Origin: Octopus sinensis
Taxonomy: Eukaryota
Reading direction: 5' to 3'
Assembly: GCF_006345805.1 (NCBI RefSeq)
Contig: NC_042997.1
Span: 43,896,001-43,960,000, forward strand
DNA: 64,000 nucleotides
Numbering within the stretch: position 1 is the first letter of the stretch; every line of letters starts with the position of its first letter. Positions 8,333 to 56,074 of this stretch are shown here, piece by piece. The notes beneath the pieces are model-generated. The model did no database searches and was not told the DNA's origin. It worked only from the letters and a program-made list of their open reading frames with translations. A program made the position numbers and the translations under genes.

Positions 8333-8430
8333 ATCCTCTGTTTCTGGTATTTGTATTTTCTGTTCAAAATATGTAGATCTCGTAGGAGTATTATTTCTCG
8401 TATCATCATGTGTATTTTCCTCGTCATTAT
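8333..8430 (-). CDS. SLC11A2: NRAMP N-terminal coding exon
   Basis: 98-bp phase 1-0 exon, ttcaag|ATAATG...GAGGAT|GTAAGT. It encodes (D)NDEENTHDDTRNNTPTRSTYFEQKIQIPETED. TYFEQKIQIPE resembles the TYFxEKIxIPE segment preceding FSFRKLW in NRAMP2, and the exon joins in frame to 1604-1726. Confidence 0.9.
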
Positions 8431-14970: not shown

Positions 14971-16763
14971 TCCTATCATGACACTGGTGCCCAACTGTAT
15001 CAATCCAAGTTGGCAGCCTTTCCATTGGATAAACATCAGTGATGTGGAGAGAAGACTTATATGCATGGGTAACAGCCAGTCTCTCTCAGTCTTCTGTTAC
15101 CACTCAATACCTTAGCAGAAGGAGATGAGCCCACGAACTTCAAAGGGTCCCTGAGACCAGTGAGCAATGTGGGTGACATTGTTTTTGAACAACTGCAAGC
15201 CAATGTCTAAAGACAAAACAGAGGCAATGAAAAGAGCATTCTGATGAGGAAGGTTAGGTCTAGTGGTTAGTGCAGGGCATTAGAATGCCGACAAAATATG
15301 TATAATGAGAGTGAATGGGCCTGAGTGGAGATGATATGAGACTAATTAGCTCTGAAGAGCGAATAGAAAAAGCAGTCTGAAGAGATTTCACATTTGTGAG
15401 CCAGAGGTTAGAGTGTGTAAGGTGAGTAGTGACTCAGTAGAGAAAACAATGTGTTGCTTCTCTACAGCAAGGCACCAGTTCCTGTCCCTCTATCATACTT
15501 TAATTTGTCAACAGCTGGTATAAAGCCACCTCCCTCTTTACTACATCCCCACCCAATTGAGAGATACGGCTGCTATCTCTAGCAAAATCACGCAAGCACA
15601 TAAGGGCCTCATTATCAGCATTTTTTTGCTCCAGGTGAGCCATCTATTGTATCATTCCCTACCACTCCTCCTCGTCAACTACTTCAACTGTAAGAGACTC
15701 CAAGTAAGGCGAAAAAGCCGTGTACATGTTTTAATATTACATATAATACACTTTTTTAAAAATTATATATCACAATTGGTATACAATAACATAGTTACAG
15801 GTTTTCAACAACTCAGGTGCATTTCTGGTGGCAAAAAGCGACAAGGGAGTGTCTGTAAATCCGATCAAGCAAATATCTCAAGGGATTTTGTTTGTAAAGC
15901 ACTTGTTTCTGGTTTTGCCGTCGCTACAGAAACATTTGAGTTCAGAACATAGATCAACAAAAATAAAAGATGTAAAGTACATTCGTCTGACACTCTATTT
16001 CCGTCACTCCATGCATAATTTCTTCAAATAAGTTTTAGACCCAATATGCAAGACCGTCATATTAACCTTACAGGCACCCGAGTAAATCACTACACCGGAC
16101 CCTATAGGATTTATTTACTGACAGCGAGCCGCAGCACACAGGTAAGATGTGGGGGCCCCTAGACAACTGCCTAGTGTACTCAAGGTTTAAGACAGCATTG
16201 CCAATATGTAAGGAATTTTTTGGTTATCTAACCGCAGTAGGGACGGGTGAATAGCAATTCATTTACTGGAGTTTGGACACAAGGTTAGACACGAAATCAT
16301 AGTGAACCATGCAAACACACATGAACACAAAATATTCATTTACATACGCAGAATATAGAGGAACTGAGAATGTGATATTCATAATCTTCTCACGAGCGTG
16401 AGATAAAAACAGAATCAATGAAGACTCAATTTTGCAGGGAGTGTTTTTTGGAGGGTTAAACGCGAGTTGCCAGTTTGTCACACACCGTTTCATTTCATTT
16501 GCGATTAATGAAATGATCTTGACAAGAAATAATTAAAACCTGGGTTGTGAACACACGTAATTGGAAGATGAAATTTAACTGTAAACATAATAGCATCAGA
16601 ATCTTCACACGCCAATGTAAAAAAAGAAAAATACTCAAGAAAAACACGCTTAATTGTTGTGTAATTATTGAAACAGAAAGTGTATAAAATACCAAAAGGA
16701 ATGAAAATTAAGGTAGAAAAAAAATCATTTGATAGGAGAGAAGCAGCGAGATGAAAGACTAAC

Positions 16764-16803
16764 CTTCTTCGTTGTTTAAAGCTTTTAAGCTCATGTAACT
16801 CAT
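16764..16803 (-). CDS. SLC11A2: Candidate proximal first coding exon of NRAMP (MSYMSLKALNNEE-D)
   Basis: ATG with A at -3, then 13 codons + 1 nt, then a strong AAG|GTTAGT donor. Phase 1 matches the 8430 acceptor (G+AT = Asp). It sits in a CpG-retaining region. Confidence 0.65.
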
Positions 16804-18629
16804 GATAAGACCATAAAAACGCCGAAAGGAATTAAAATGTAACAGTTTTCCACTTAAATTATTTTTTGTCGATGTTCTTTCATTTGAAAATGCTTGTTCG
16901 GGCGTTTGCAGGACTGAACCCACAACGTTGTCTCTCTCTTTCCCACAACCAACTTATAAGTTTATTTTGTGCTCAAAAAGTTTCCTTATTGTTATTATTT
17001 TACAACAAACAAAACTTTCGGAATAACTGTGATAGAGATACAACTTATTAACAGGTGTATTGATCCGAATTCGCTGTTTGACACCAGCTGTGGACATTTT
17101 CTCACCTCCGCAGCTGTTTAATTTAGATGTGAAACTTTCCGAAAAGTGAGACTTAAGTAATTAAGACCGAACTTTGGAAGAAACTACACGAAACCGAGAG
17201 TATTCTATACTTGTTTGTTTCTAAATTTACTGGTAGAAAAACAAGTGTATGGCTTGGTGCTAGCCGGAAGCCTCACTGGTCTTAAATTCACTTAAATGTT
17301 TTTAATTTACTTAGTTAAATGTTTCAGAGCACTTGCAATCAACTCTTCATCTAAAACTCGAAATGAATTTTGAATTCGCCTTAAATATACGTTTATTTAT
17401 TTAATCCAGCTACGAACCATTGAAATCTTTAGGTTGGATTAAAAGTACTCGATGATTATATTCCATATGTGGCTAAAAAAATAAAAGATTAATGTAGGAT
17501 AATACAGCAAGTAAAAAATAAAATCTTACTGAAACAACGAAGACCAGGACGAAATGAGGAGGTGAAGGGACACCCGACATTGTCGTTCGACCTGTTAGAA
17601 ATAGCAGCTAAATGCTATTTAACTCAAACTCTACTATCTGTATAAAAATATTCCAAGTGAATGGACATTGTTCTGCTCGTAAGAACTAACCACAATCGGA
17701 GAAGAAATTACGTTATTTGTTCAGCATCTAAAGTAAAGGAGGGGAATATTCAAGTGATTAAAACAGAATTTTCTATAGAGTATAAAAATATACCGAGCAC
17801 GCAGAAATACTTCAGAAAAAGCAACTGAAAGATTCATTTCGCAATAGTATCTCAGAAACTACCATTATGTGACAAATTTCATTCATGGTTACGTTTTTAT
17901 TATTCCAATTTTTATCCTCTTGAAGAATACAAAAAAATTACATAAACCAACAAACTTATTAGTCATGTCAAAACAACAACTGGATTTGACGAAACGAACG
18001 AGTCTGATGTCAAACTTTTTTTTTTTTTCTTTCTTGTAAACAAACTGTCCTGAAATCTTGTTAGCAATCATTCTTTTTTTAGAACTTTGAATCTCGAAGC
18101 AAATAAAGTCTAAATAATAGTGTGCAAATATTGGATAGAAAAAAATCGAAGATTGGAATCGAACCTACATCTCCTGTAGATAGATATGACATGTTCTACC
18201 ATTGGACCAAAACAAATTCTCCATCCCTTTAAGTAACTTTATTCCTACTAGCGAAAAGCAAATTTATTCATCTTTTAGTCAGGTCATGTTAGTGACCTCC
18301 AAACCTAGTGTGACAAGGTGGAGGAGGTTATCCTCAAAGCAAAAGACCCCTAGCTTGAATACTTGCAAGAGTGAGGCCCCCACTAAAGATATCCAAGGTG
18401 CCAGATGATGGTATGAAACTGGTTGAAGGATTAAGGGTATCACACTAATCGTTCTTTTCAGGATTTGAACTCAGAAGGTAAATGACCAGAACAACTACCA
18501 CAAGGCATCTAGAAACACTTTTCATATTTTTGTCAATCCAGCATCCCGGGCTGGTCACTTTTTATTGACCTTGAATGGCTGACAGGTAAAACTGATCTAG
18601 TTAGCATTTGAACTTATAATGACTAGCAT

Positions 18630-19042
18630 ACTCTCTTTTCTACTTGTTTCAGTCATTTGACTGTGGTCATGCTGGAGCACCACCTTTAGTCGAGCAACTC
18701 GACCCCGGGACTTATTCTTTGTAAGCCCAGTACTTATTCTATCGGTCTCTTTTGCCGAACCGCTATGTGACGGGGACGTAAACACACCAGCATCGGTTGT
18801 CAAGCAATGCTAGGGGGGGACAAACACAGACACAAACACACACACACACATATAAATATATATATATATACATACATATATACGACAGGCTTCTTTCAGT
18901 TTCCGTCTACCAAATCCACTCACAAGGCATTGGTCGGCCCGAGGCTGTAGCAGAAGACACTTGCCCAAGGTGCCACGCAGTGGGACTGAACCCGGAACCA
19001 TGTGGTTGGTTAGCAAGCTACTTACCACACAGCCACTCCTGC
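18630..19042 (-). mobile_element. SINE family A
   Basis: Full-length copy homologous to 9507-9900. Confidence 0.85.
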
Positions 19043-20014
19043 ATCATAACAGATTCCACAAAGCATTCTATCCAACTCCCTAAAGAGTGCCAAGTCACAG
19101 CCAAATGCAGAGAGAGGAGGAGGAAAACATTAGCTTAATGACGAACATTATTTTAATCTATTGATAGGATTGGGAATGGCTGTGTGGTTAAGAAGCTTTC
19201 TTTGCAACTATGTGGTTTTGGGTTCAGTCCCACTGTGTGGTACCTTGGGCAAGTGTCTTCTAATATAAACCTAGGCTGACCAGGGCTTGTGAGCAAATTT
19301 GGTTCATGGAAACTGTATGGAGGTCAGTCATATATATATATCATCATCATCATCGTTTAACGTCCGTTTTCCGTGCTAGCATGGGTTGGACGGTTCAACT
19401 GGGGTCTGGGAAGCCAGAAGGCTGCACCAGGCCCAGTCTGATCTGGCAGTGTTTCTACAGCTGGATGCTCTTCCTAACGCCAACCACTCCGAGTGTAGTG
19501 GGTGCTTTTTATGTGCCACCGACACAGGTGCCAGACGAGGCTGGCGAACAGCCACGATTGGATGGTGCTTTTTATGTGCCACCGGCACGGGGGCCAGACG
19601 AGGCTGGCGAACGGCCACGATCGGATGGTGCTTTTATGTGCCACCGGCACGGGGCCAGACGAGGCTGGCAACGGCCATGCAGCTATGAGGGTGTATCTTT
19701 GTGTCTGTCTTTATCATGCACCCCCACTTGACAACCAATATTGGTTTGTTTACATCCATGTAACTGAGCAGTTTGGCAAAATACACTGATAGTATAAGTA
19801 CCAGACTAAAAAAAAATACTGGGAGTGATTTGTTCTGACTAAAACCCTTCAAGGAAGTGGCCCTGCATGGCCAGTCCAATTACTGAAACAAGTAAAAGAT
19901 AATAAAAAAAAGTATGGAGAACAACTGGACATGTTTATATCTTCTCAGACTTCTTCAATGAAGCTCAGAGAAGAGAAAAGCCCTCGGCTATAGTACAAGA
20001 CACTTGCCCAAGGT

Positions 20015-20705
20015 CAGTGACAGCTCAAGTATAGGTACTGCAGAACTGCAGCACCTGCTATTTCTACTCGATGTTATCGATAACATCCAATATAATGAGT
20101 CTTTTTTCTTTATACTTGTACATTATATAATCCTTAAGCTTAATGTAAGTAGACATCCCCCAGTTTATGAGAAAATATAAAAGTCCTTGTATAGAACTGT
20201 TCGCTTCACAGCTCCAGTGACGTGGTGTTTGGCTGTTGTGTGCATGCTCACATGTCCAAGATAGGAAGCTGCATGCTAGGAAGAGAGAGCACTGTGGTTC
20301 ATGCAGTGCCAACCCTGGTGTGCTGGTAAAAGACAGTGTTTCTTTTTGACTCCACATGTGTTGTGCTTAAAAACACGTTTATATTCATGAATGTGATAAA
20401 GTGTAGAATTAGATTATTATCCTGCTTCCAGCTACAATGTTGCTGCCAAAATTTGAAAAATAAGGCTGATTTCCTCCCCTTATTTTGTGATTTAAGTGGG
20501 ACTTTTGAAAAACAAGGGGTAATTCATGGCAGTGTTCAGTAAACAAATTAAACTCACTACCCGGCAGTGGCTAAAACACGAACCAATCAAGTTTATGTAT
20601 AAATTTTCTTTTTATGTGTTTGTTTCCTTTTACACAATATTAAAACAATGGCTAAAGATTATCTGAAGCAGCAACCTCACCAATTTTATCTATGAATCGC
20701 CATTG
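20015..20705. mobile_element. Second copy of the same hAT element, inserted inside a SINE
   Basis: Colinear with 42573-43276. It splits a family A SINE at cacttgcccaaggt|. Confidence 0.85.
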
Positions 20706-21898
20706 CCAAAGTACCACACAGTGGGACTGAACCTGAAACCATATGATTGTGAAACAAATTTCTTATCACACAGCTACCTCAGTCTTCCTCCAAACATGTT
20801 GCACATACATGTGCAGACACATGACCAGGACTAGCCAATGGGGGCCCTAAAAAGTTATTCAGAGACACCATCTGCAATAAAATCAGCAGTTAAGAGGAGT
20901 GAACATATTTATGTAGGGAATCAAAAATCTAATTAGAAATACTTCTGGAATATTCTAGAGGAGAACATTATTGAGTTAAGTGAGTTAATAAAAATATATG
21001 TCTGTGAACAAATCTACACAGCCAAATAAACAAGAAATCTAACTCATAATCTGCCTGTACTGATAAATAACAATAAAATATATAGAGGCCATATTTTAAG
21101 TGTTAGTAATCAGTATGAGATTACAGGATTAGATTGCTAATCTATCTGAGTGTGCATATTTGTTTTTATCATCAAAAATTTAAAAACCCTTTAGCATCTA
21201 AACTGACCATATCTAGCTCAAATATGCCTCCTGTTTCAAGTTCAAACTGGTTGGGTCTAGCCTCTCACACATACCCTACAATATCATCCAAAAAATAGAC
21301 AATAACATCACCGAAATCTCACAGCTATGAGACCAATATTTGACTGGTACTCAGAGTTTTTTTGAAACAAAGAAGAGGCAAATTTGGCTCAGAACGAAAG
21401 GAGCTTAGAGCAAAAACTAAATTCTGTCAACCTAATAATAATACCTACAGGCATTGATTTCAAATTTTGGCATAAGGCCAGCAATTTCGGGGGAGGGGGG
21501 TAAGCTGACAACATCAGCCCCAGGGCTCAACCGGTTCTTATTTTATTTACCCTGAAAGGATGACTGGCAACATCAGCCTCGGAAGAATTTGAACTCAAAA
21601 CATAAAGACAGACAAAATGCTGCTAAGTATTTTAACTGGTATGCTAATGATTCTGCTAGTTCACCATCTTATGGTACCTATAGATATTAAAGTATTACTC
21701 ATCATCATCATCATCATCATTTAGCGTCCGTTCTCCATGCTAGCATGGGTTGGATGGTTCAACTGGGGTCTGTGAAGCTGGAAGGCTTCATCAGGCCCAG
21801 TCAGATCTGGCAGTGTTTCTACAGCTGGATGCCCTTCCTAACGCCAACCACTCCGTGAGTGTAGTGGTTGCTATTTCTAGCAGGTTAACTACATAGAG

Positions 21899-22447
21899 CA
21901 GTGGTTCTTAAACTTTTCAAAAGATTTTACATAGCAGTCCCTTACAGTTCTTTTTTTTTTTTTTGATTCATGGTCCCCTATAAAATGCCGGATAATTAAC
22001 ATGGAAAACATCACTTACATTCATGTACTGTAATTTCCGGACTATGGAACAGCACTGTCCATAGACCCACAATCCCAGAAACCACAACTTAATCCAGGCA
22101 ATGCCCCACTGGGATACAATAAATGCACATGAAAATATGGAGAATCCGTTGATCAATTGGTTACAAAATAAATGAGAAATAAAAAATACTGATAGAACAT
22201 GCATGATCAAACATTATACCCGTTATATTGGCCAATCACACTTGTACAACAAGTGTGATTAGCAAATGAGTGCGTAAGAATGGTGAGAGATTTTGAGGCC
22301 AATGACAAAAAAGGATGACAGCATGCTAAAAATTGAAAGTCTTGAAATTTTAAAACTTAACTGTCTCCAAGCCACCCTGTTGTCACAATACTTCAGTGTC
22401 CCTTTGTGGTCTCGTAGGGACCGTGGACCCCAGTTTGAGAACCACTG
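21899..22447. mobile_element. hAT (Buster-type) MITE
   Basis: CAGTGGTTCT...AGAACCACTG TIRs with a perfect 8-bp TSD ACATAGAG (nnnTAnnn). Confidence 0.92.
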
Positions 22448-22594
22448 ACATAGAGAGTCCCTTTCATTGGCTTTAGAGAACAGATTTGAATGCATCTCTA
22501 GATGACTAAAAATATCAGCAAAAAGTCATTTTATAGCTAGTATTTGGCCTGGTATCAGAATATATGAACCACTCAGCAGTTTATCAAAAGAAAT

Positions 22595-22744
22595 TTTATG
22601 TAGCTTGTTTACCAACCACATGGTTCCAGGTTCAGTCCCACTATGTGGCACCTTGGGCAAGTGTCTTCTACTATAGCCTCGGGTCGACCAAAGCCTTGTG
22701 AGTGGATTTGGTAGGCGGAAACTGAAAGAAGCCCATTGTATATA

Positions 22745-22789
<45 letters not shown>

Positions 22790-22997
22790 TTGTGTGTCTG
22801 TGGAAGTCCCCCCAACATCGCTTAACAACCGATGCTGGTGTGTTTACATCCCCATAACTTAGCGGTTCAGAAAAGAGACTGATAGAATAAGTACCAGGCT
22901 TACAAAGAATAAGTCCTGGGGTCGATTTGCTCAACTAAAGGCGGTGCTCCAGCATGGCCACAGTCGAATGACTGAAACAAGTAAAAGAGTAAAAGAG
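22595..22997 (+). mobile_element. SINE family A
   Basis: Full-length plus-strand copy. Confidence 0.85.
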
Positions 22998-23405
22998 AAT
23001 GGCAGGGGACTGGTCACTGTAAATGTTGTGTTGGGAAACTTCAGTCAATATTCTTCAAGTGAGGTCTTTTAATATGAAAGCTAGAACTGTTAAGGCGACA
23101 AGATGGCAGAGTCAGTAGCACGCTGGGCAAAATGCCTAACAGCATTTCATCCATCTTTACACTCTGAGTTCAAATGCTACCAAAGTCAGCTTTGCCTTTC
23201 ATCCATTCAGGGTCAATAAAATAAGTTTCAGGTGAGTATTGGGATCAATGTGGTCAACTTAACTCCTTCCTCAAACTTACTGGACCTGTGCCAAAATTTG
23301 AAATCAATATTAAAGCAAGAATTAACAGTAGTAGCAATATTACTTACAAGTCATCCATAAACCATAAATACAGCTTAAAATATTATCTCCTGCTTCTAAC
23401 ATTAA

Positions 23406-23848
23406 AGATTGACCGTTATGCAAACCTCCTCGAGGAATGTGAAGACGCAGGCTGGAAAGCAGAACATTTTCCAATCGAAGTCGGATGTAGAGGATTTGTT
23501 GGACACAGTGTGAGGCAACTGTTGTTATCGTTAGGCCTAACTCATCGTAAAGTCAATACCACCATGACCGATATCCAAACTACAGTGGAGAAGGCTAGCC
23601 TTTGGATTTGGTTAAAAAGAGACAATGAGCGATGGCTAGAAGAATATTGAGCTTTATTTATCAAATAAAGCTAATCTAGCAAGCAGGGTCTCATATCACT
23701 GAGGGGGGCTGGTGCGCATTGATGCCATCGAGAGGTAGGCCCTGAAACTGCGTGCATTCTCTCCTGATGACCCCATACACTTGCTGGCTTCCAGTATGCA
23801 GAGTTTTTGACTGGTAGCACTTGCATGTGCAAGTTGTTTGCAAGACAC
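23406..23848 (+). mobile_element. 3' end of an RLE-type non-LTR retrotransposon (Hero-like)
   Basis: KIDRYANLLEECEDAGWKAEHFPIEVGCRGF...EKASLWIWLKRD* is a restriction-like endonuclease C-terminus. It is flanked by a 60-bp direct repeat. Confidence 0.75.
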
Positions 23849-25244
23849 ACAAGTCATCCATAAACCATAAATACAGCTTAAAATATTATCTCCTGCTTCT
23901 AACATTAAGAGTAGTTTGGTTTATGACTATGCATTGACTGATGCATCAATACTCTTTTTCTTTTTTTTTTTGATTTCCAAGTACCTGTCCTGATGCTCCA
24001 ACCGCTACACAAAACATTCTTGATTAAATTACTTGTCTTCCAAGGCTATTTTGGTTGATTGGCAATTATTAATTAACCAATAATCAATTTATAACCACGA
24101 GCCCACCAATTTACTCTTCTACTTTGTAAAAATGATTTCAGTATTTCTAACCTAATCTACTCAATACAGCTACTTCTCATCACCCCAACCGTGTCTTAAT
24201 TCAACATCCATGCACTCCATTTCACCAGTTCATCCTTGCTAGAACTTGAATTCCCTCTTTCCTCCTATCGCATAAACTTCAACTGCATCAATTTTCCAGT
24301 TTGCAGGCCCTTCTGAACTAGAGAGATCAATGTTGTTGTTTTAACCCAAGTCAGGTTTGATCCAGCAGATCTACTATAAAAATTGTCCCAGCCTTGAGCA
24401 CTCTATGGCTTTGTAAACCCAAAGCAATATTATCTAATGAATCCATTTTAAAATTTTTTTATAATATGGCAGAGAGGTAAATCTGTGGAAGATTTAGTTG
24501 TTAATTCTAGCAGATCAAGAGGCTGTATAGAAGTTGAAGTTGAACTTGCAGCAATTTAAGTTTTTGAACTAGACTAAATTGTAGTTAGCACAAAGGTGTA
24601 GCCATGACAGATTTAAAATAAACAGGGTGTAAAATTAGGTCTTAAAAGTGTTCCAGAGGACATGGTCAAATGTGTGAAATTCAATATAGTGATTCATTAT
24701 TGTTTCAATGTCCACTTTTCCATACTTGCAATGGTCAGACCGAGTTTATGGAGGTTGATTTTCTATGGCTGGATGCCCTCCTTGTGGCTAAACTTCACCA
24801 GTTACCAAGCAAGATAATATTTCCTGTAGTCAGAGAAGTTGTGTAGAATATTGGAAATGAATGACACAGCTTGTTATTTGCATGACAGTGATATTTATTT
24901 TCATATTCCACACAATGTTAAGGTAAGGACACACACACACAAACATCATCATCATGATTTAGTGTCCGTTTTCCATGATGGTTTGCAGGAGCTGACAAGT
25001 CAAAGGTCTCAGCCAAGCTATGGTTTCTCCTTTGGTATGTTTTCTTTGGAAGGTTGTCCTTCCTCAAGCCTAACACTTCAGAGTTTACTGGGTCCTTTTT
25101 ATGTGATACCAGCACTGGCAGGCCACCAAGTAATTTGCAAGACAAAGACCCCTTGATTAGGCCAGGGGAGTAGTATTGAGAGAGGTGGCTTTGTACCAGT
25201 TGATGAGAAGTTAAATTATAATAAAGGGAGAGAGATAGGTATAC

Positions 25245-26110
25245 ATCATCATCATCATCGTTTAACGTCCGTTTTCCATGCTAGCATGGGTTGGACGGTT
25301 TGACCGGGCTCTGGGAAGCCAGGAGGCTGCACCAGGCTCCAGTCTGATCTGGCAGTGTTTCTACAGCTGGATGCCCTTCTTAATGCCAACCACTCCAAGA
25401 GTGTAGTGGGTGCGTTTTACATGCCACTGGCACAGGGGCCAGAGGAAGCTGGCAACAGCCATGATTGGTTGGTGCTTTTTACATGCCACCAGTGAAGGTG
25501 GCACTGGCATCGGCCACGTTTGGATGGTGCTTTTTACGTGCCACCGGCACGGATATCAGAACTACAATTTCCATTTGATTTTCATTTCGATGCTGATGTA
25601 CTCAATGTCTCCTCAAGCACAGCAGGTCACCGTACAGGATTGGGGCTGGTTATGCGAAACTGGTGTAGGATACAGCCATCAACTCACTTTATTTGTCGGG
25701 TCTTCACAGTCACAGCATATCTCCAGAGGTCTCAGTCTTTCATCATAGCCTCTGTGAGGCCCAATGTTCAAAGGTCATGCTTCACTATCTCATCCAATGT
25801 TTTCCTGGGTCTACCTCTACCCCAGATTCCTTCCACTGTTTGGGAGTGGCACTCTTCACACAGCTCTCCTCATCCATCCGTAGTACATGACCATACCAGC
25901 GCAAACGTCTCTCTTGCACACCACATCCGATGCTTCTTATGTCCAATATTCCTCTCAGGGCGCTTACACTTTGTCGTGTGTGCACACTGCCATTACACAT
26001 CCAGCAGATCATGCTAGCTTCTTTTCTTTCGAGCCTGCGCTTGTCCTCCGCAGTCGTAGCCCATGTTTCACTGCTATGAAGCATGGCAGTTCACACACAT
26101 GCATCATACA
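25245..26110 (-). mobile_element. RTE-clade LINE 3' fragment
   Basis: MLHSSETWATTAEDKRRLERKEASMICWMC...ERRLRWYGHVLRMDE, followed by the 3' UTR and (GAT)n tail. Confidence 0.88.
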
Positions 26111-26119
26111 ATCTACCTG

Positions 26120-26153
<34 letters not shown>

Positions 26154-26154
26154 T

Positions 26155-26340
26155 GCAGAATTTAGACTAGTAGAAATATGTTTTCGTCCCATATTTCAAC
26201 TGCTAAGAGGCAAATACACTGCAGTTACTGTGGAGAAAATAACCCAAGAGAGATTTTTTTTCTCCACAGTAACTGCAGTGTATTTGCCTCTTAGCAGTTG
26301 AAATACATGACAATCATATTTCAATAAACCTAAATTCTGC
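26155..26340. repeat. Interrupted fold-back hairpin
   Basis: Perfect 48-bp arms at 26192-26239 and 26258-26305, plus outer pairings 26173-26180/26315-26322 and 26155-26165/26330-26340. Confidence 0.9.
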
Positions 26341-26652
26341 TTATACCTAAACGCTGCTTTGTGCCAATATATATATATATATAACCGGTGTTGTTCAAAC
26401 GATGAATAGCTTTGCGTAAACCATTGGTTCGTTTTGGTCTCTTACTTTATTATCATCTTATAATCATCTCATAATAATGACTGTTTTGACTCGTATTACT
26501 ACCTCAGTCAATCTAAATGTATATATTTGTCACTACCTATCATAAATAGCCTTTTTCTATTTGCAATATGCATTTTCATTGATTTTTCATATTTTACCCT
26601 TACATTTCTACGTGTATTTTATATTCTATATTTTCTTTTCGTAACATATTTC

Positions 26653-26690
<38 letters not shown>

Positions 26691-26694
<4 letters not shown>

Positions 26695-26855
26695 TAGAAA
26701 AAAAAACCACCTTTTATCAATTCAAAATGAAAAATTAAATTACACCATCTAGAAAATTACATGTTATAGAAAGATTGAATATAAGATAAAAAATATAACG
26801 ATGATTAATTTAATTTTTCATTTTGAATTGATAAAAGGTGTTTTTTTTCTAATTT
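26691..26855. repeat. AT-rich inverted repeat between (TA)n arrays
   Basis: About 50-bp arms at 26691-26742 and 26806-26855 with a ~63-bp spacer. Confidence 0.85.
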
Positions 26856-26940
26856 ATATATATATATAATATTTTGTGAAATTTGATTTAGTATTTCTAA
26901 ATTGAATTTTTCCCTGTAAGTTTGGAATAATATTCCCTCA

Positions 26941-26982
<42 letters not shown>

Positions 26983-27627
26983 ATGTCAGTTGATCATATA
27001 TCCAAAAAAGAAGCACACTCTATATGTTAAAGTAGTAATGAATTTACAGGAATGGTCAGTCATAAAGTGACCAATGGTTTTGCATCCACAAAGTGCTTAG
27101 CCTTATAGATAACACATCAGACTCCAATAGCTACGGATGTTGGAGACCACTTTATACCATGCACACACACAGAGGCACAGGCATGACCATGTGGTAAGAA
27201 GTTTGCTTCCTAACCACATGGTTTTGGTTCAATCCCACTGCATGGCACCTTGGACAAATGTTTTCTACAATATCTCAGGCCAACCAAAGGCTTGTAAATG
27301 GATTTGGTAGACAGAAACTAAAAGAAACATGTTGTGTGTGTGTCTGTGTGCGTGTGCTACTGTCTCCGTGCCTTTATCCTGGTTGATAATTGTAAATGAG
27401 TGTCGTCATAATGCAAGTAGTATCTCTTTCCAGTATTATGTGAGAACATGCCTAACCATGGGGAAATATCAACTTCCTTGGTAACAGGTGAAGGCTGCTG
27501 ACAGGTAGGGCATTCCGCAGCAGAAAATCTACCTCAACAAATTCTATTTGACCCATGCAAACATGGGAAAAAGTAGATGTTAAAAAGTGATATATATATA
27601 GAGAGAGAGAGATGGGGAGGGAGGGGA

Positions 27628-27662
<35 letters not shown>

Positions 27663-27809
27663 CAACAGAAAAAATAATCATAGTTTTGTTTATATTAATA
27701 AATATTGATATTCTTATTAAATAAGAATGTTGGAATTTCATCATTTCTAGAGCCCCTAAAAACTGAAGATATATCTGTTTTATCAGACATAGCCGTTTTC
27801 TAGGTTGAA

Positions 27810-28290
27810 AAAGTGAAACTGTTTTGCCTCTGACAAAAAGAAAAAAAGTGAAACTGTTTTGCCTCTTCCAAAAAAAGTGAAATTATTTTTCCTCTGCCAA
27901 AAAATGTGAAACTATTATTCCTCTGCCAAAAAATGTGAAACTATTTTTCCTCTGCCAAAAAATGTGAAACTATTTTTCCTCTGCCAAAAATGTGAAACTC
28001 TTTTCCCTCTACCAAAAAAGTGAAACTGCTCTTCTTTTGCCTCAAAAATGAAACTGTTTTTTCCTCAGCCAAAAGAAGTGAAATCATTTTCTTTTACCAA
28101 AAAATTCAAAACCGTTTTTTCAGCAAAAAAACAGTAAAACTGTTTTTCTGTAGCTAAAGAATGTGAAACTGTTTTTCATAACTAAAAATAAGATAAAAAT
28201 AAGTTGTTTCTCTGGCAAAAAATGTAAAAGTGTTCTTCTTTCAGCAAAACAATGAAACTGTTTTCTCAGCCAAAAAACATGAAACTATAA
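27810..28290. repeat. Degenerate ~30-bp minisatellite
   Basis: Repeated aaaaatgtgaaactatttttcctctgcc-like unit, about 15 copies, most homogeneous at 27880-28010. Confidence 0.85.
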
Positions 28291-28656
28291 CTGTTTTCTC
28301 TTTACCGTTTGGAATTGCTATTTTTGCAGGGTCGTTTCGAAGTAATTAATTTAATTAGTCAGCCTGTTTGCCCACCTAGTCAGTTTGGTAGCATCATTCA
28401 AAAGCTACAACAATGCAACAATATGAGGAAACACATTGTAACTAGCAGTGAATGACTACATCCGACAGTCTGCTCAAATTAAGTAGTCAGGGGAGAAGAG
28501 TAGGGTCCAGAAGACCTTTGCAGGCTTTCCCAGACTGATGAGATTGTTTGAACCTCTGTAGGTTAAACTGGGAGAAGTGTTTCATTTTAACTTCAAGACT
28601 ATTCTCGCATACTTTGGATCACTAAACTCACACTTCTTTTAATGATTTTATTTCAA

Positions 28657-29030
28657 CTAGCAGTATCGCCCGGCGTTGCTTGGGTTTGTAAGGGAAATAA
28701 CTATATAAGCATTTTTAGAGAGTTATAGCCTAAAAATAGCAAAAAAATGGTAAATTTTTTTTTAAATCGTTGACTCATCGTAGACATTTTTAGAGAGTTA
28801 CTTCCCTTATATAATAGCGAAAAAAATGCATTAAAATGGAAAAAAATGATGGTAAATTATTTTTAAAATCATAGACTCATCGTAGACGCGCACTAATACC
28901 CAGAAGGGCTCGATATGAATCACGACTATAAGATACCCGGTTTTGGTTAAACTGCACCGCAAAATGTGGGAGTAGTTAGGAATCTAAATCGTAGGAGACA
29001 GACACACAACCTTACTTTTATATATAAAGA
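28657..29030 (-). mobile_element. Non-autonomous Helitron (same family)
   Basis: TC and CTAG termini, A|T insertion site, subterminal hairpin; homologous to 10277-10672. Confidence 0.85.
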
Positions 29031-29571
29031 TAAATTCTTTCAGTTTTATCAGTGCATTTTCAATAATTACCTAAAAGTATTTACAACCGTTCCTCAAGTA
29101 TCCTTCACTCAGTTTAGTAAACCTGAGTAAATGAACTGGAATATTTGAAGTCTACCAGAAAATAATGTAAATGTATTCCATGTTTTAAGGGTGAGACATG
29201 AGGGATAGTGTAAGGAAAAGAGACAGCTATATCTGAGGGATTTGGAGTGAACTGGGGATACAACTATATAGTGCAGAAGAATAGAAACTATTGTAGTTAT
29301 GGTAACACTGAAGAAATAAAATCTTGTAGTTATGGAAACACCGAAGAAATAAAATTTGAGTCTGAAGTTATAACGGACTGGTGAATCAGTGTTTCCATCA
29401 CAACCTCCTATCAACTTGAACTTCCTTTGAATGTTTATGTGTGCATGTGTGTAGAAGCAGCATTTCAGATCTTTGAGCAGTATTCTATGTGTTTTATACA
29501 ATCACATCATCAAAATCTGAAAGGTATGAGATAATTTCGGTTTTTAACAATGGGAATAAATAAGTATGACA

Positions 29572-29973
29572 TCTTTATATATGAAAGTAAGTTGTGTGTC
29601 TGTCTGTCTCCTACGATTTAGATTCCTAACTACTCCCACATTTTGCGGTGCAGTTTAACCAAAACCGGGTATCTTATAGTCGTGATTCATATCAAGCCCT
29701 TCTGGGTATTAGCGCGCGTCTACGATGAGTCTACGATTTAAAAAAAATTACCATCATTTTTTTCCATTTTAGTGCATTTTTTTCGCTATTATATAAGGGA
29801 AGTAACTCTCTAAAAATGTCTACGATGAGTCAACGACTTTTATAAAAATTTACCATCATTTTTTTTCCATTTTTAATGCATTTTTTTTTTGCTATTTTTT
29901 ACTATAACTCTCTAAAAATGCTTATATAGTTATTTCCCTTACAAACCCAAGCAACGCCGGGCGATACTACTAG
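29572..29973 (+). mobile_element. Non-autonomous Helitron (same family, opposite orientation)
   Basis: a|TCTTTATATATG at the 5' end and CAACGCCGGGCGATACTACTAG|t at the 3' end. Confidence 0.85.
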
Positions 29974-31523
29974 TATGACATAATAATCTAAATAGGAAAG
30001 AGTTAAGGTAAACCAGGTACAGAGAGAGGTGTGACGCCTCAGCTAACAAACAAAAAAGTTTCAAAATGGAAAATAAGTTCGTGGATTTCTTTACTCATGC
30101 AAAATTTGATATTAAAAACAAGTTACGAGGAAGTGAAGTTTCGCAGGTTAAGGTTAGGAGTTTAGGATTAACTTGTACTTATTTCATTCATTCATCTCTT
30201 GAATGCTGATCTATTTATTCAACTGTCTCATATATGTAGATACAATGTCCCAGGTTAATAAAAACGTATGAGAACTAATACTATTATTATTGGTGTAGTC
30301 CATGTGAACATAACGCCCAGCCCAGCAAATGTCGATTTTACAACCCGACTACAACACTAAAGTATAATTACAGTTTAGTGCTCCATACACCCGACTCTGC
30401 GAACTTGTTTCTTCGTAACTTTTCTTAAAGACAGCATATCTTTGCGTGCGCCAAGAATCAACCAACATATTTTCCGATTTGAAAATGTTCTGTTTAGGAG
30501 CTTCAACCCTTAGATATACGGATGGATTTGTAATTTAGCTTAAAAACTATGGGTCGAGAAAAAATATATCCTACAATGTCTGAGCTAAATAGCATTCAGA
30601 ACTATATCGTCCCAGCCTGGGATATTGTACACAACCAGAAATAAAACGACTGATAACGATCGAATATCGAACTGTAATGTAAATATTATTGAGTATAGCA
30701 AATATTCTGAAAACTATGATAGTAATTAATATCCTACAACTTATTACACCAAAACTACGGTCGATCATTAGATATCAATTAAGCTTGTACCCTGATATTA
30801 AAATCGGACACAAACAATTCCACCAACTTTCAAGTTTGTTTTATGTGATAGTGAATATAAGCAAAACATGTTAGGAAAAATAATATTTATAAATATCAAG
30901 ATATATATATATCTATAAAATTTGCGAATATAACAAATAATAACGATTTCTTCTAATATAGACACAAAGCTAGACATTTTGGTGTCGGGTATTAGGGGTA
31001 TTGTTGATTAAATCCCCTCAGTACTTGAATGATAATGAAATGAATGGGATTTTGAATATGTTTATAAATATTTGTAACATTGGTGCAAGACTCTTACAAG
31101 ATAAATTCGATTTAAACGATCTTAGTTTTTGCCAAGTACACACTTTATTGTATATAGAAATAATGACAGGTAAAGACATATGTACAATTAATAAAAATGA
31201 AAATACATTTCTTCATTCTCATTGACTGAGGATCATCGTACACGTTGTGTGTGTGTGTGTGTTTGGACAATTAAAAGTTTAGAATGTTCCACCTGTTCCA
31301 ATTCTGTAGCATCGAAAATATTACGTAAATAGTCTTTTTAACAGTCCTTTTTAGTATACAATACTAAATCTTGCACAATATTAAGTCATAACGAATTCCA
31401 TGGACATAAAAGACAAAAACAAATTCATCAAAACAAAACAAAAACAAGTTAAAATAAGAATGATGAAGCTATGAATGAAATCTCGGACGGGTGAAAGAAA
31501 AATAAAGGAGAGAATTGTTTTAC

Positions 31524-31608
31524 CAAATCTCGAAGAGGAGCCTTCAATTTCGCGACTGTTCATCTCAGAAGCCGTTGGTTCTTCGTTCGTGATAATTTCT
31601 TGATCCAT
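31524..31608 (-). CDS. SLC11A2: Candidate distal first coding exon of NRAMP (MDQEIITNEEPTASEMNSREIEGSSSRF-D)
   Basis: aggATGG Kozak context, then 28 codons + 1 nt, then TTG|GTAAAA donor. Phase 1 matches the 8430 acceptor. The acidic/Ser-rich peptide is typical of NRAMP N-tails. A possible upstream acceptor (ttccag|) lies at 31710. Confidence 0.5.
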
Positions 31609-31780
31609 CCTGTTCTTATCAAACAATAGTTCATTAATTAATTTTATCTTTCAATCATCGTTTTTGATAACTTTGTGTCAGTGAAAAAAAAAATTAGTTT
31701 CTAATACACCTGGAACAAACACCTCTAATTGTTTAAAGGTCGGTTAAATCTCATGTACTGTTCGCTTCTTTCTCTGTTTA

Positions 31781-31987
31781 TACGTGATGCGGGTCTAAAA
31801 TATGGTTCTTGGCGACAGACCAACGTCCGAAAGCCAATTCTCCTGTTTTGCCCTCGAAATATATTATTATATACTTTGTGCTCTTGTTTGTTGTTTGTAC
31901 ATGAGTGTGTATACGTGTGTGGATGAAAGCTAATTTGTGGGTGCGCGCACCGTGTGTCTATTGGTTAAAAGGTAGTTTGTGTATTGG
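31781..31987 (-). promoter_or_regulatory. Candidate regulatory motif cluster upstream of the distal NRAMP exon
   Basis: TACGTG at 31781 and 31912, palindrome GGTGCGCGCACC at 31940-31951 (TGCRCNC on both strands), and ATTGG/CCAAT at 31960 and 31983. Confidence 0.4.
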
Positions 31988-32446
31988 GACAGAGGATAGT
32001 TCAGTTAGATTTGAAACACTTTATTTTCTTGAAACTCACCCAACAAGTACTTATTTATTTCTGATGTGCTTGTCATTGAAAAATAATAACAATAAAAATA
32101 ATTTTCATTGTCAAAAACACAACACAAACCTATTTTTAGTTTACTAATTAGGCAGAGCAATTTTCAAAAGCTTATCTACGGATTCAGTTTAATCATGTAC
32201 AATTTTATTTGAAAATATATCTGAAGTTAATCCTAGATGTAATTAAATCCAGATAGGACAACAAACGAAAGCAATCCTTCCAAATGCAGTAGCACCTAAT
32301 TAAATATGTTTAATATCAACAAGTGATTTCAAAACTCAAGTCGAGTAAAACTGAACAAAATGTCATCGGACAGCAATTCTTTGTCAATTATTAACGCGGA
32401 GAAGGCAGTCGCTCCATGTGTTTCTTGCTTTTATGTTCTCACCCCT

Positions 32447-32485
<39 letters not shown>

Positions 32486-33090
32486 CAACTTTTTCTCTTG
32501 ATCCACAGAATTCCCGTCTTTGTACGGGGAAGTTTGTGTAAATGTAAAGTACTTTTCTCAAGACATCTTTTTGTTAAGTATTAATATCAGATGCATGTAA
32601 CTTTCTTCAATATTCAGACAAGTGACTGTCATTCATTGGCTGTGGAAGAAATGGATGCACTTGTCGTAGGCCTGGTGATTAATCACTGTTAGTTCTTGTC
32701 GAAAACGAATGTAAAAGGCCATACTTATTTGATCACCTGTAACTTAAGGACAGGTGATTAAAGAAAATATTACTCTGCAGCTAGATGACAGCTGCCTTTG
32801 GAAGGCATCCTATTGTTCAAGATACTTATCGTTATCAACGTGTGAATCAACCTGTTGCTGGCTGACAAAATATCATCCACCCTCCTCTGACTTATTCTCA
32901 ACGATGAAAATCATTTGGTTTGTTGTTATTTGGAATATTTTACACGGTTTAGATTCACACAGAAACTTCGTCGTTGAAATGAACACTCCTCAGCAATTCT
33001 AGGTAGGTTCACCGCGCATTTATACAGATGGCAAGTAGCAATTAAAATGAGAGGAAGAAAGGCATTATTAATTAGTTGAAATGGTTCTTT

Positions 33091-33322
33091 AGGCGGTGAG
33101 CTGGCAGAAACGGTAGCACGCCGGGCGAAATGCTTAGCGGTATTTCGTCAGCCGTTACGTTGTGAGTTCAAATTCCGCCGAGGTTGACTTTGCCTTTCAT
33201 CCTTTCGGGGTCGATAAATTAAGTACCAGTTCCGCACTGGGGTCGATGTAATCGACTTAATACCTATGTCTGTCCTTGTTTGTCCCCTCTAAGTTTAGCC
33301 CCTTGTGGGTAATAGAGAAATA
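33091..33322 (+). mobile_element. SINE family C (~230 bp)
   Basis: GGCGGTGAGCTGGCAGAA...GAGTTCAAATTCCGCC head. Homologs lie at ~21455-21670(-), ~23097-23310(+), ~50185-50427(-) and ~59808-60037(-). Confidence 0.8.
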
Positions 33323-34063
33323 GGTTCTTTATTTTCATCGTTACAATATAAGATGTAACTTTTTTCGAGTTGTTACACAATGATAATTTGCCCTTCTTTT
33401 ATTCGATCTGTAAGTAATTAAACTCATCTTTTGTTGACTGATGGGAAAAGGAGTGAAAGAAAGAGTTAGAGTCTACCTGTTTCGCCTGACAAGAAGATAA
33501 TCCATAAGTGAAAGGAGAGAAATAGATGCTCTTCAGCTACGCACCAAGTGATCAGAGAGAGAGTGATTTTGAGTTGTGTATTTATATTTTTCCTAAATTA
33601 GATCAGTCTACACAAAGGATTTTCCGTCTCTTATCTTCTTGACCCTATCTAACCTAAGAATGTTAACTTAAACGATAAAATCCTTACTGAATGTGACTGT
33701 TGACTTACGTTAATTTCTAAATGTAAAAGCCGAGAACAATAGGAAAAGAACTTGTAGAAAAATGTAGATTCGGCTTCGGTTCCTGGTTTAGAATGTAGGA
33801 AACTATTCGTTACACAACCATAAAAGAAAGATTCGGAGATCAACTGGGATGACAAGGTGGCTGAAAGTTTGTGTGATTATAAATTCCAGTGTGACAGAAT
33901 TACCACTTGCGGGGCATTTTCAGGATTTAGTGTCTTATTTTCAAGTTATTTTCCAAAAATCTAACGATGATAATGTTTTTGTACTGACAAGCATAACCTA
34001 TTGGAATGATTAGTGCAAAAACAATAAAGACAAATAGTATTTAAGTAGTAATCATTAATTGAA

Positions 34064-34486
34064 ATGGCGATCTTTCGTCTCTAGTAGACCTTTCCGTCGA
34101 TTTCCGTAAAAATTTTTTTTTTTTTTTTACATATGGGCTTGCGGGAACTTTTGAAGTAATATACATACATATACACAAACACCGAGTAAAAAATTTCAGT
34201 TATCTCTCTCTTTCACACATTACTCTGTCTCTTCACACACACTAACAGAAGCACTTCACTTACACAACATACTGTCTGTCTCCCACACCCCATCAAACAC
34301 ACACACACACACACATGTACATCAATGCTTCGGTAACTTCAAAAGAACTTCCCTCGTCATACAATCGCTTTCTCTTAGTCTCTTTCGCTCTCATTACTTC
34401 AAAAGTTCCCGCAAGCCCATATGTAAAAAAAAAAAATTTTTTACGGAAATCGATGGAAAGGTCTACTAGAGACGAAAGATTGCCAT
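34064..34486. repeat. Inverted repeat with spacer, probable Penelope-like remnant
   Basis: About 95-bp arms at 34064-34160 and 34393-34486. The 232-bp spacer contains CA/TACA microsatellites. Confidence 0.85.
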
Positions 34487-34959
34487 TGAAATTGCATGAC
34501 GAAATCACACAAGAAAGATAAGTTGCGTGAATGTATCTTTATTTATGAAAACTCCTTTCCGTCACTTTTAGGAAGCGCACGGAACGCTCTAGCTTTTGGC
34601 CTTATCGGTACTTGATTCGCATACATAAGAAGAATAGACGGTGACTTCCTCATTCGGGTAACACATGCGAACGTGTGCTTGAAGGTTTCGTTACTTTATA
34701 TGCTTCGTCAGAGACACGGCTGTTTTTCATCTACTTTCTATTCAGCTGTTTTTCATCCATGCTCTTCTACTGTTCAACTGCCGTTTTCTCCATGTTCAAT
34801 CTGAACAAAAAGTGGAGAAATGGTTGGAAATAAGTACACAATGAATGATAAACATGATTATTTAAATGTAATAATTCAGACGAGTCTAGCAGAATAGAAA
34901 AACCCTAGGGAGCAGGTATGCATGTTTCACATAGTTTCTATGAGTCACATAGAACTGTG

Positions 34960-35330
34960 AAATTCTGTCACGGCCTGTACATATGATCTGGAGACGGGAG
35001 TATCACTAAAACATTTTTTTTCTTAGCAAAAAGGGCGACGTAATTTAATCCAAAGGTTTTCGATATTTGCGGTAACGGAATCACAAAATTTGCAAACACG
35101 ATGAAGTTCTGTGGCCGAATTTGTCGGGACATAAGAGTCGTAGGAAAACTAATCTGAAGTAAATCTTCGATCCATGGAATGCTATGTCTTATGGTCTTTC
35201 CAACGATGTCATGCAGGTACATCTTACCTTGCGAATGATTTGTATCTGGATTTAATGTACTGCAGGCACTTTGAAAAGTACGCTTATAAAACGTTGCTGG
35301 TACGATCCAAATGTGTTGTCATCATAAAAT
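34960..35330 (-). mobile_element. Possible highly decayed DDE transposase relic
   Basis: A stop-riddled frame ends ...VTANIENLWIKLRR, reminiscent of Merlin or Tc1 IENLW motifs. The evidence is weak. Confidence 0.2.
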
Positions 35331-35481
35331 TCGTAACTAATGTAAGTTCAACCATTATCATTTAAAAACGTTAAAAACACAAAATTTGATGATGTTTTAC
35401 AGTAATGATAAATTAATTCTAAGTAAACGAAAATTATTTTTTGCAACGCTTGTTTGGTTTTACGTGAAATTCATGTGATGA

Positions 35482-36254
35482 TCTTATATATATATAAATA
35501 AGAGTGTCTGTGTGTGTGCACGCGCGTATGTTCCTTATGCATTTCAAAACCGAGTTGCCATTTTTGACGTATGGGGTATCAAGATTCAGTAAGCTTCTGG
35601 CTACCAACTAAACTACATTTTCATTCACTTATTTGCATTACAAAAATTTAAGATTATTTTTCTTTTAGTCACCTATCGTAAACGACATCTTTTACCACCA
35701 CCACAACGACGATGACATCACATTTTCTATGTGTTGGCGCGTTCGTTACGTGCGCTAGGCCGATGACTGACAAGTATATGTCAGTCATTTCAACCAAAAT
35801 TGCAGTGTTCCTTACGATACTGACGATGTGTGAATAATGAAAGTAATGTTTCTCCGAATTAGTCACATCTGTATTATAATAAAGAAAGTTGCTTAGGCGA
35901 TCTTTCGTTTTGACTTGCAGAGCTGTTATCTGCGTTCGTTAATTTCTGTAAAAAATTTTATTTACTTTTGTTTTAAAGTGAAAGAGAGGAGAACATGAAG
36001 GATGTATGTACGTGTATATGAAATGGATGTGTGTGTATGTGAGAGAGAGAGAGAGGGGGGTGAAGGTGGAAAGAGTGAGAGAGGAATGAAGAAAGAAAGA
36101 GAGTGAGTGAAGGGGTATGTTGTCATGTATACGCACATACCTCAATACATATGCATACATTTTTTTGAATGTACATGTGCGTGTGTGTGTGCGAGAGAGA
36201 GTGAACGTGTGTTCTCATGTATGTGTAAGTGGCACTCTCTCTTTCTTTCTTTCT

Positions 36255-36287
<33 letters not shown>

Positions 36288-55138: not shown

Positions 55139-56037
<899 letters not shown>

Positions 56038-56074
56038 CCTGTTGAGTTAAGTGCATGTACACGAACATCGAAAC

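Follow-up and report, generated by a model that had tools for sequence, protein, structure and literature searches.

In mammalian SLC11A2, the gene of the metal transporter DMT1, two alternative 5' exons are joined to a common exon 2. As described in PMC4458610, exon 1A is coding and adds 29-31 amino acids, while exon 1B carries no coding sequence and exon 2 then provides the AUG. The same account reports that tissue use differs between these 5' exons, one being restricted to duodenum and kidney and the other ubiquitous, and that the 1A and 1B proteins differ in their degradation (Hubert and Hentze, 2002, cited in PMC4458610). In the sea bass Dicentrarchus labrax, slc11a2-beta has two mutually exclusive 5' exons, each with an initiator methionine and encoding a distinct N-terminus. 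Each of these first exons contributes 34 bp of coding sequence to a gene of about 10.5 kb, and the isoforms have been confirmed by RT-PCR (PMC3103463). Alternative promoters and first exons are common in animal genes, including mammalian and fish SLC11A2.

The window is the whole 64,000-nucleotide stretch of Octopus sinensis DNA analyzed here. The first-pass annotation had proposed that it contains two ATG-initiated mini-exons about 15 kb apart, serving as alternative first coding exons for NRAMP in the manner of DMT1 1A and 1B. A literature search for cephalopod or octopus NRAMP found nothing relevant.

The locus and its exons

The window matches Octopus sinensis chromosome CM016859.1 with 0 mismatches across 41,608 nt. 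Its minus strand carries the 5' part of an NRAMP2/DMT1-type (SLC11A2-like) divalent-metal transporter gene, and the remaining gene body lies past window position 1. The coding exons are as follows.

31608..31524 (85 nt), minus strand: exon 1B (distal), coding part; N-terminus of isoform X1 (575 aa)
16803..16764 (40 nt), minus strand: exon 1A (proximal), coding part; N-terminus of isoform X2 (560 aa)
8430..8333 (98 nt), minus strand: common exon 2, following tttcaag and a long pyrimidine tract; phase-1 acceptor, first bases AT
1726..1604 (123 nt), minus strand: common exon 3; 41 residues of NRAMP TM1, including the DPGN metal-site motif

Besides the DPGN motif in exon 3, membership of the SLC11/NRAMP family is indicated by Pfam PF01566, which is recorded on both full-length products. 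A chimeric query made of the window's N-terminus and the cuttlefish remainder is 64-71% identical to NRAMP2-like proteins of other mollusks. A Pfam scan of ten long ORFs reveals no second gene in the window, the sole match being a reverse-transcriptase fragment. An Rfam scan of the window gives zero matches, and no other genes are called within 10 kb upstream.

The two mini-exons are on the minus strand, with 14,805 nt from ATG to ATG. The coding part of exon 1B starts with the ATG at 31608 (A at -3, G at +4), encodes MDQEIITNEEPTASEMNSREIEGSSSRF plus a G, and ends after 31524 in the phase-1 donor TTG/GTAAAA. Its 28-residue tail is acidic and Ser-rich. That of exon 1A starts with the ATG at 16803, also with A at -3, encodes the 13 residues of MSYMSLKALNNEE plus a G, and ends after 16764 in the phase-1 donor AAG/GTTAGT. 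The exon 1B donor is weak, scoring 2.5 versus 7.7 for exons 1A and 2. Exon 2 encodes (D)NDEENTHDDTRNNTPTRSTYFEQKIQIPETED, has zero in-frame Met codons, and matches the annotated full-length products. Since it opens with AT and both donors leave a G, the Asp codon is rebuilt after either junction. The first-pass reading of these signals (A at -3, phase-1 GT donor, Asp regenerated at 8430) is therefore correct for both exons.

Frame compatibility is easily found in this DNA. Upstream of exon 2, 55 kb of sequence contain 1,324 candidates running from an ATG to a phase-1 GT, 55 of which combine 8 or more codons with an acceptable donor. A third good-looking candidate, MTSTSEINKYLL (32076..32040, donor TGG/GTGAGT), is absent from the annotation. 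With so many candidates upstream, frame compatibility alone does not exceed chance, and what distinguishes exons 1A and 1B is external evidence rather than any pattern within the window. TATA-like hexamers 5' of each exon were also considered and dropped, as about one per kb is expected in AT-rich DNA.

Match to annotated isoforms

This external evidence comes from splicing in silico. Joining exon 1B to exon 2 and the rest reproduces XP_029636392.1 (isoform X1, 575 aa) residue for residue, and joining exon 1A in the same way reproduces XP_029636399.1 (isoform X2, 560 aa). Both matches were obtained by exact-sequence look-up of the constructed spliced proteins, the O. sinensis entries being computational model RefSeqs. 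Exact look-up was needed to find X1, as it shares a database cluster with an unrelated 56-aa metagenome protein. The annotated coding sequence of the longest product of the locus begins at the 31608 ATG. In annotation by NCBI's Gnomon pipeline, alternative variants appear only when they have transcript or RNA-seq alignment support.

Both junction products are therefore annotated isoforms sharing the exon 2 acceptor, which at the level of gene models is the general SLC11A2-type organization of alternative first exons. The two mini-exons are real alternative starts of the O. sinensis NRAMP2 gene; they are already in RefSeq, and hence not new. The proposal of alternative first coding exons for NRAMP thus holds, and it is further backed by orthologous isoforms in Octopus bimaculoides, in Octopus vulgaris (1A), and in Argonauta (1A).

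Conservation of the two exons

Both isoforms are known from O. bimaculoides (X1, XP_014767971.1; X2, XP_014767972.1), where exon order and spacing are the same: 1B is at 10001, 1A at 24809, and exon 2 at 32632, which corresponds to 14.8 kb plus 8 kb. Exon 1A lies within a conserved block.

16706..16926, minus strand: conserved block around exon 1A, comprising a putative core promoter/5'UTR, exon 1A itself, and ~25 nt at the 5' end of the intron

This block includes a run of ~85 nt without a single difference between O. sinensis and O. bimaculoides. It is also found in Argonauta (blastn E = 7e-21) and can be aligned across the three species, with conservation of the ~120 nt 5' of exon 1A reaching as far as Argonauta. 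O. bimaculoides (XP_014767972.1) and O. vulgaris (CAI9716795.1) have the same 1A peptide as O. sinensis. Annotation also places the start at exon 1A in O. vulgaris and in Argonauta hians, where GAB1598110.1 begins with the 1A form MSYMSLNHLNSDE. The 1A tail contains a conserved YMSL, in form a YxxPhi sorting motif. Judging from these alignments, exon 1A is a constrained, octopod-wide start.

Exon 1B behaves differently. O. bimaculoides keeps the exon 1B ATG context and donor, but the two species differ at 8 nucleotides (7 nonsynonymous, 1 synonymous), changing 6 of the 28 residues. Exon identity is 90.6%, versus 87-92% in the flanking non-coding DNA. As the divergence is close to that of its surroundings and nearly all changes are nonsynonymous, there is no signal of purifying selection on the peptide. 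By this comparison exon 1B evolves almost neutrally and is weakly constrained as a peptide. Peptide conservation in other cephalopods, which the first-pass annotation had put forward as a check, is observed for 1A from Octopus to Argonauta and is weak for 1B between the two Octopus species. The intact 1B reading frame in both Octopus species was dropped as evidence, because it is expected by chance at ~9% divergence over 28 codons.

CpG landscape and putative promoters

The mini-exons lie in two zones that retain CpG, as had been noted at first pass.

29500..36500, unstranded: CpG-retaining zone around and upstream of exon 1B, o/e 0.9-1.4 (given as 1.0-1.4 over 29.5-36.5 kb)
16000..18000, unstranded: CpG-retaining island at exon 1A, o/e 0.8-1.06 (about 1.0 over 16-18 kb), inside a CpG-depleted intron

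Over most other sequence of the window, CpG o/e is 0.1-0.5. Its maximum (1.4) is reached at 35-36 kb, which is 3.5-4.5 kb upstream of exon 1B. In O. bimaculoides a CpG zone is likewise found at 1B (about 4-11 kb, with 1B at 10001), and the o/e is 1.05 at 1A. In both Octopus species the DNA downstream of each of the two exons is CpG-depleted. In Argonauta, where 1A alone has been located, the transition from CpG-rich to CpG-poor sequence falls at exon 1A. CpG depletion is the expected footprint of gene-body methylation, and its onset just downstream of 1B suggests germline transcription from there. The distal zone is a candidate for an unmethylated promoter region of exon 1B, or for sequence upstream of it, and the proximal island for an internal alternative promoter of exon 1A. 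Each exon probably has its own promoter, and the conserved CpG islands at both fit two promoters. A scan for metal-response elements (TGCRCNC) gives 24 matches versus 29.6 expected, hence no enrichment, and a palindromic TGCGCGC that precedes the 1B ATG by 335 nt lacks significance.

A model for the two starts, and its alternatives

The reading that we favor, with a probability of roughly 85%, is that two start sites yield mutually exclusive ATG-bearing first exons, 1B and 1A, each of which is joined to exon 2 to give X1 and X2. Transcription would begin either at the distal exon 1B (31.6 kb) or at the proximal exon 1A (16.8 kb). Whichever first exon is used would bring its own AUG and phase-1 donor and be spliced to the acceptor at 8430, where Asp is rebuilt. 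The products would be 12-TM transporters that are identical except for the cytosolic N-terminal tail, 28 residues in X1 and 13 in X2. X1 and X2 presumably differ in the place and timing of their expression. They may also differ in trafficking or turnover, and the YMSL of the 1A tail could be relevant to trafficking.

Exon 1A could instead be the sole meaningful start, with 1B transcripts arising as low-level or tissue-restricted by-products of a CpG-rich region and encoding an unselected peptide. The rapid change of the 1B peptide between close Octopus species and the weak 1B donor both go in this direction. So does the distribution of 1B-type products outside these two species: the sequence constructed for O. 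vulgaris is absent from the protein collection (exact look-up), none was found for Argonauta, whose longest product on record is the 1A form, and tblastn, blastn, and mini-exon enumeration show nothing resembling 1B in the 10 kb that precede exon 1A in Argonauta. However, independent X1 models exist for two species, each with RNA data of its own, the 1B ATG, its A-3/G+4 context and its donor are conserved, and CpG depletion starts just downstream of 1B in both. Disordered N-terminal tails diverge quickly in any case, as that of exon 2 has also done in Argonauta, and the N-termini of cuttlefish and squid have about the length of 1B. We consider it unlikely that 1A is the only start that matters. 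That both mini-exons are chance ORFs without a biological role would be suggested by the 1,324 compatible candidates and by the good-looking but unannotated MTSTSEINKYLL, but is effectively refuted by the exact RefSeq matches, the syntenic orthologues, and the conservation of 1A to Argonauta.

A single promoter could also serve both exons, which would then be internal alternatives following a shared non-coding first exon, for instance at the 35-36 kb CpG peak, with the choice made by splicing. The position of that peak upstream of 1B is compatible with such a scheme, as is an AG found 1 nt before the 1B ATG. Yet this AG has no pyrimidine tract, and the 1A ATG lacks an AG immediately before it. 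Exon 1A moreover sits in a CpG island of its own amid a CpG-depleted intron, conserved in O. bimaculoides, and the Argonauta transition falls at 1A. The conserved ~120 nt upstream of 1A also look like a core promoter or 5'UTR. Taken with these points, splicing from one shared promoter is very improbable, and two start sites with mutually exclusive first exons remain the preferred explanation.

The octopus 1B N-terminus has 28 aa versus about 24-30 aa in cuttlefish and squid, and both the 1B peptide and the decapodiform N-terminus end in SSR.[FY]-like residues. In global alignments of octopus 1B or 1A with cuttlefish or squid N-termini, the observed score is reached by a fraction of 0.014-0.35 of shuffles, depending on the pair. 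A tentative scenario, to which we give somewhat less than even odds, is that octopods gained the internal promoter and exon 1A after the split from cuttlefish and squid, the distal 1B-type start being older. If so, mammals, teleosts, octopods, and perhaps chitons would each have evolved dual N-terminal isoforms of DMT1-type transporters on their own. This would imply a recurrent selective need to uncouple the tissue expression or the trafficking of a metal transporter via its N-terminus.

Comparison with known systems

Unaided reading of raw sequence was enough to identify, to the exact base, two alternative first exons that are real. The biological gain is small, since both isoforms were already in RefSeq for the O. 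sinensis locus and for its sister species. The contrast between a conserved 1A and a weakly constrained 1B, together with a design that seemingly recurs in distant lineages, is of modest value.

The proposed echo of DMT1 1A/1B is only a loose one, since exon 1B has no coding sequence in mammals. As in mammalian DMT1 as described in PMC4458610, two mutually exclusive 5' exons lead to a common exon 2, giving proteins that differ only at the N-terminus. Unlike that description, both octopus first exons bear an AUG, exon 2 has no Met, and the exons are 14.8 kb apart; the mammalian order of a coding 1A upstream, a non-coding 1B downstream, and an AUG in exon 2 is not found in octopus. Sea bass slc11a2-beta is, by analogy of gene organization, the closer parallel: in both animals each first exon supplies an initiator Met and a distinct N-terminus, a likeness of logic that does not imply homology. 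The octopus gene differs from it in the coding length of its first exons (40 and 85 nt), in its 83-kb size, and in having isoforms that are models only. Among mollusks, NRAMP2-like isoforms X2/X4 and X3 of the chiton Liolophura sinensis differ only in their first ~17-20 residues (MTMESVTEEPPRALVSLTAE... versus MMSDTDRLRLADNIDLE...), which suggests that alternative coding first exons also occur in a further class of mollusks. Octopus NRAMP2 offers a possible comparative case for the repeated evolution of N-terminal isoforms in DMT1-type transporters.

NRAMP2 first exons and annotated isoforms

The window contains the following exons of the octopus NRAMP2 gene, and those after exon 3 fall outside it.

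NRAMP2 exons in the window
ATG at 31608, donor TTG/GTAAAA after 31524, minus strand: exon 1B, encoding MDQEIITNEEPTASEMNSREIEGSSSRF plus one extra G
ATG at 16803, donor AAG/GTTAGT after 16764, minus strand: exon 1A, encoding MSYMSLKALNNEE plus one extra G
8430..8333, minus strand: exon 2 (98 nt), first bases AT, preceded by a long pyrimidine tract and "caag"
1726..1604, minus strand: exon 3, with NRAMP TM1 and its DPGN motif

Exon 2 has no Met and ends in phase 0, and the extra G of either first exon joins its AT to form GAT (Asp). The two ATG mini-exons with phase-1 donors, A at -3 of both ATGs, and the Asp at the exon 2 junction are all as the first-pass annotation described them. However, 1,324 ATG-initiated, stop-free candidates ending in a phase-1 GT occur in the 55 kb that precede exon 2, and 55 of these are 8 or more codons long with a donor score of at least 5. 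The 1A/1B pattern alone does not exceed chance, and independent evidence is therefore needed. How readily chance produces such mini-exons is illustrated by a third frame-compatible candidate, MTSTSEINKYLL + G (32076..32040, minus strand), which has a strong donor (TGG/GTGAGT) and lies 430 nt upstream of exon 1B within the same CpG-retaining zone; its N-terminus is absent from all retrieved proteins.

A homology search with a 102-aa query returned short fragments only. An exhaustive representative search led to P0121, a cuttlefish-type NRAMP, and the octopod proteins were then retrieved with a chimeric full-length query: O. bimaculoides X1 (575 aa), O. sinensis X2 (560 aa), Argonauta hians "X2" (560 aa), and truncated Octopus forms of 497 aa (O. 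vulgaris "X1", O. bimaculoides X3). The N-terminus of O. sinensis X2 (MSYMSLKALNNEEDNDEENTHDD...) equals window exons 1A, 2 and 3, while that of O. bimaculoides X1 (MDREIFTNEEPTASVMNSREIQGSISRYDNDEEN...) is the 1B orthologue. The expected spliced products were then constructed and looked up by exact sequence. Exon 1B with the O. sinensis remainder is XP_029636392.1 ("isoform X1"), and the exon 1A form of this species is XP_029636399.1 ("isoform X2"). Exon 1A with the O. bimaculoides remainder is XP_014767972.1, and with that of O. vulgaris, CAI9716795.1. The O. sinensis locus of X1 (L003; GCA_006345805.1, CM016859.1) overlaps the window by 41,608 bases without a single difference; adding 43,896,000 to a window coordinate gives the position in the record, whose CDS range begins at the exon 1B ATG. 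Given these exact matches and the identical locus, exons 1A and 1B are already annotated as alternative starts of this gene. Gnomon lists an alternative variant only where transcript or RNA-seq data back it. The homology search missed O. sinensis X1 (P0363) because of a clustering artefact, this protein sitting in a 90%-identity database cluster represented by an unrelated 56-aa metagenome protein (P0364).

RefSeq also lists 497-aa "X3" isoforms (P0248, P0249, P0361) that begin at a Met within TM1 (exon 3, 1673-1675, minus strand), two in O. sinensis (XP_036356492.1, XP_036356494.1) with equivalents in O. bimaculoides and O. vulgaris. Splicing either first exon straight to exon 3 gives an immediate stop (G + TA, TAA), and exon 2 skipping, once from 1A and once from 1B, would therefore explain the two X3 transcripts. 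Lacking half of TM1, the X3 protein is probably non-functional as a transporter.

Conservation across cephalopods

In O. bimaculoides (L001), exons 1B, 1A, and 2 lie at 10001, 24809, and 32632, with order and spacing as in O. sinensis (14.8 kb from 1B to 1A, 7.8 kb from 1A to exon 2). Nearly all non-coding DNA of these two genomes is alignable at 85-93% identity, so that only extreme conservation tells much about this pair. Exon 1A lies inside a stretch of ~85 nt that is 100% identical in both, and it can be aligned to Argonauta hians (L002; blastn E = 7e-21). In the three-species alignment, the ATG and GGTTAGT donor of 1A are invariant, and so are most of its codons, ~25 nt of the intron that follows, and several blocks upstream. 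A 4-codon upstream ORF (ATG GTC TTA TCA TGA; 16800-16814, minus strand), whose stop overlaps the 1A start codon (ATGA), is conserved in O. bimaculoides, and its ATG is missing in Argonauta.

Peptide conservation in other cephalopods was a check that the first-pass annotation had proposed; among octopods, 1A is strongly conserved and 1B only weakly constrained. Exon 1B differs from O. bimaculoides at 8 of its 85 nt, giving 6 amino-acid changes and only 1 synonymous change; its identity resembles that of flanking DNA, with ATG context and donor intact in the two Octopus species. Neither O. vulgaris nor Argonauta yielded a 1B-type product, and no 1B-like sequence was found in the 10 kb upstream of Argonauta exon 1A. 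The cuttlefish and squid proteins retrieved (among them Sepia pharaonis CAE1305227.1 and Logan proteins, the latter transcript-derived and on up to 38 contigs) share one kind of N-terminus, roughly as long as that of 1B, and when it is compared with 1B, 0.014 to 0.35 of shuffles reach the observed alignment score.

Probable promoters and isoform choice

Both mini-exons lie in CpG-retaining zones, as first noted: CpG o/e in the window is ~1.0 at 16-18 kb, 1.0-1.4 at 29.5-36.5 kb, and 0.1-0.5 elsewhere. O. bimaculoides has such zones at 1B and 1A, with depletion between and downstream, and Argonauta retains CpG as far as 1A and is depleted from just past it. In invertebrates, transcribed gene bodies are methylated and promoters unmethylated. 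Under this gene-body methylation model, the pattern fits a transcription start near 1B and a protected internal promoter at 1A. No convincing acceptor was found upstream of either ATG. On this reading, each first exon would probably have its own promoter.

CpG o/e is highest (1.4) at 35000-36000, 3.5-4.5 kb upstream of exon 1B; in the O. sinensis record, the 10 kb that precede 1B have no called gene. This peak could mark a non-coding exon or a transcription start further upstream, but also an enhancer or a divergent transcript missing from the annotation. Palindromic TGCGCGCA (31942-31949), with a metal-response-element-like core 335 nt upstream of the 1B ATG, is probably a chance occurrence, since the window shows no excess of MRE-like motifs (24, with 29.6 expected). 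The 14.8-kb 1B-1A interval looks like an intron filled with repeats, and the analysis found no second gene. The window is repeat-rich, with a reverse-transcriptase fragment (PF00078, E = 2.4e-8; 52617-52922, minus strand), many SINE-like copies (translation ...GWTVRPGSGKPGGCT.LQSDLAVFLQLDALPNANHSV...), and recurring stretches that look like ORFs (e.g., 286-702, 19264-19728, 55950-56471, 62574-63023).

We consider it likely (probability about 0.85) that two start regions lead to two mutually exclusive first exons, and these to X1 (575 aa) and X2 (560 aa), with the cytosolic N-tail as the sole difference between the proteins. By analogy with DMT1, their expression domains would likely differ, and trafficking or turnover might. 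The 1A tail carries YMSL, a motif of YxxPhi type that is conserved in four of four octopods and could hypothetically act in trafficking.

Exon 1B may instead be a weakly selected by-product. Its donor is weak (score 2.5, vs 7.7 for both exon 1A and exon 2) and its peptide has diverged; set beside its intact ATG context and its place as the start of annotated X1, this seems improbable. A single upstream promoter, with 1A and 1B as alternative internal 5' exons, might use a start in the CpG-retaining DNA beyond 1B; with no convincing acceptor before either ATG, we regard this as very unlikely. That both are chance ORFs, as the in-window counts alone would allow, is scarcely credible beside the exact isoform matches.

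Comparison with known systems

Vertebrate DMT1 has alternative 3' exons (+IRE/-IRE), of which two annotated Sepia pharaonis NRAMP2 isoforms with different C-termini are reminiscent (581 vs 544 aa; P0366 CAE1305227.1, P0367 CAE1305230.1; ...VLYLVPLQINGFPFSSKIAIF); the octopus 3' end is outside the window. A literature search found no paper on octopus NRAMP, so the annotated 1A/1B feature is undescribed in the literature, yet not undiscovered.

The first-pass annotation saw an echo of mammalian DMT1 exons 1A and 1B. In mammals, exon 1A is coding and adds 29-31 aa, and exon 1B does not code, the AUG lying in exon 2 (PMC4458610). This defining detail has no match in octopus, where both first exons carry the ATG. 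A closer analogue is sea bass slc11a2-beta, whose two first exons exclude one another, each supplying a Met and encoding a different N-terminus, as confirmed by RT-PCR (PMC3103463). Among annotated NRAMP2-like isoforms of the chiton Liolophura sinensis (P0269, P0277, P0268), the first ~17-20 residues are the sole difference, a sign that alternative coding first exons may occur in a further class of molluscs. From the mammalian, sea bass, and chiton cases, the alternative-N-terminus design therefore seems to recur, and the octopus 1A/1B feature is real, already in public annotation, and of a common kind of gene architecture.
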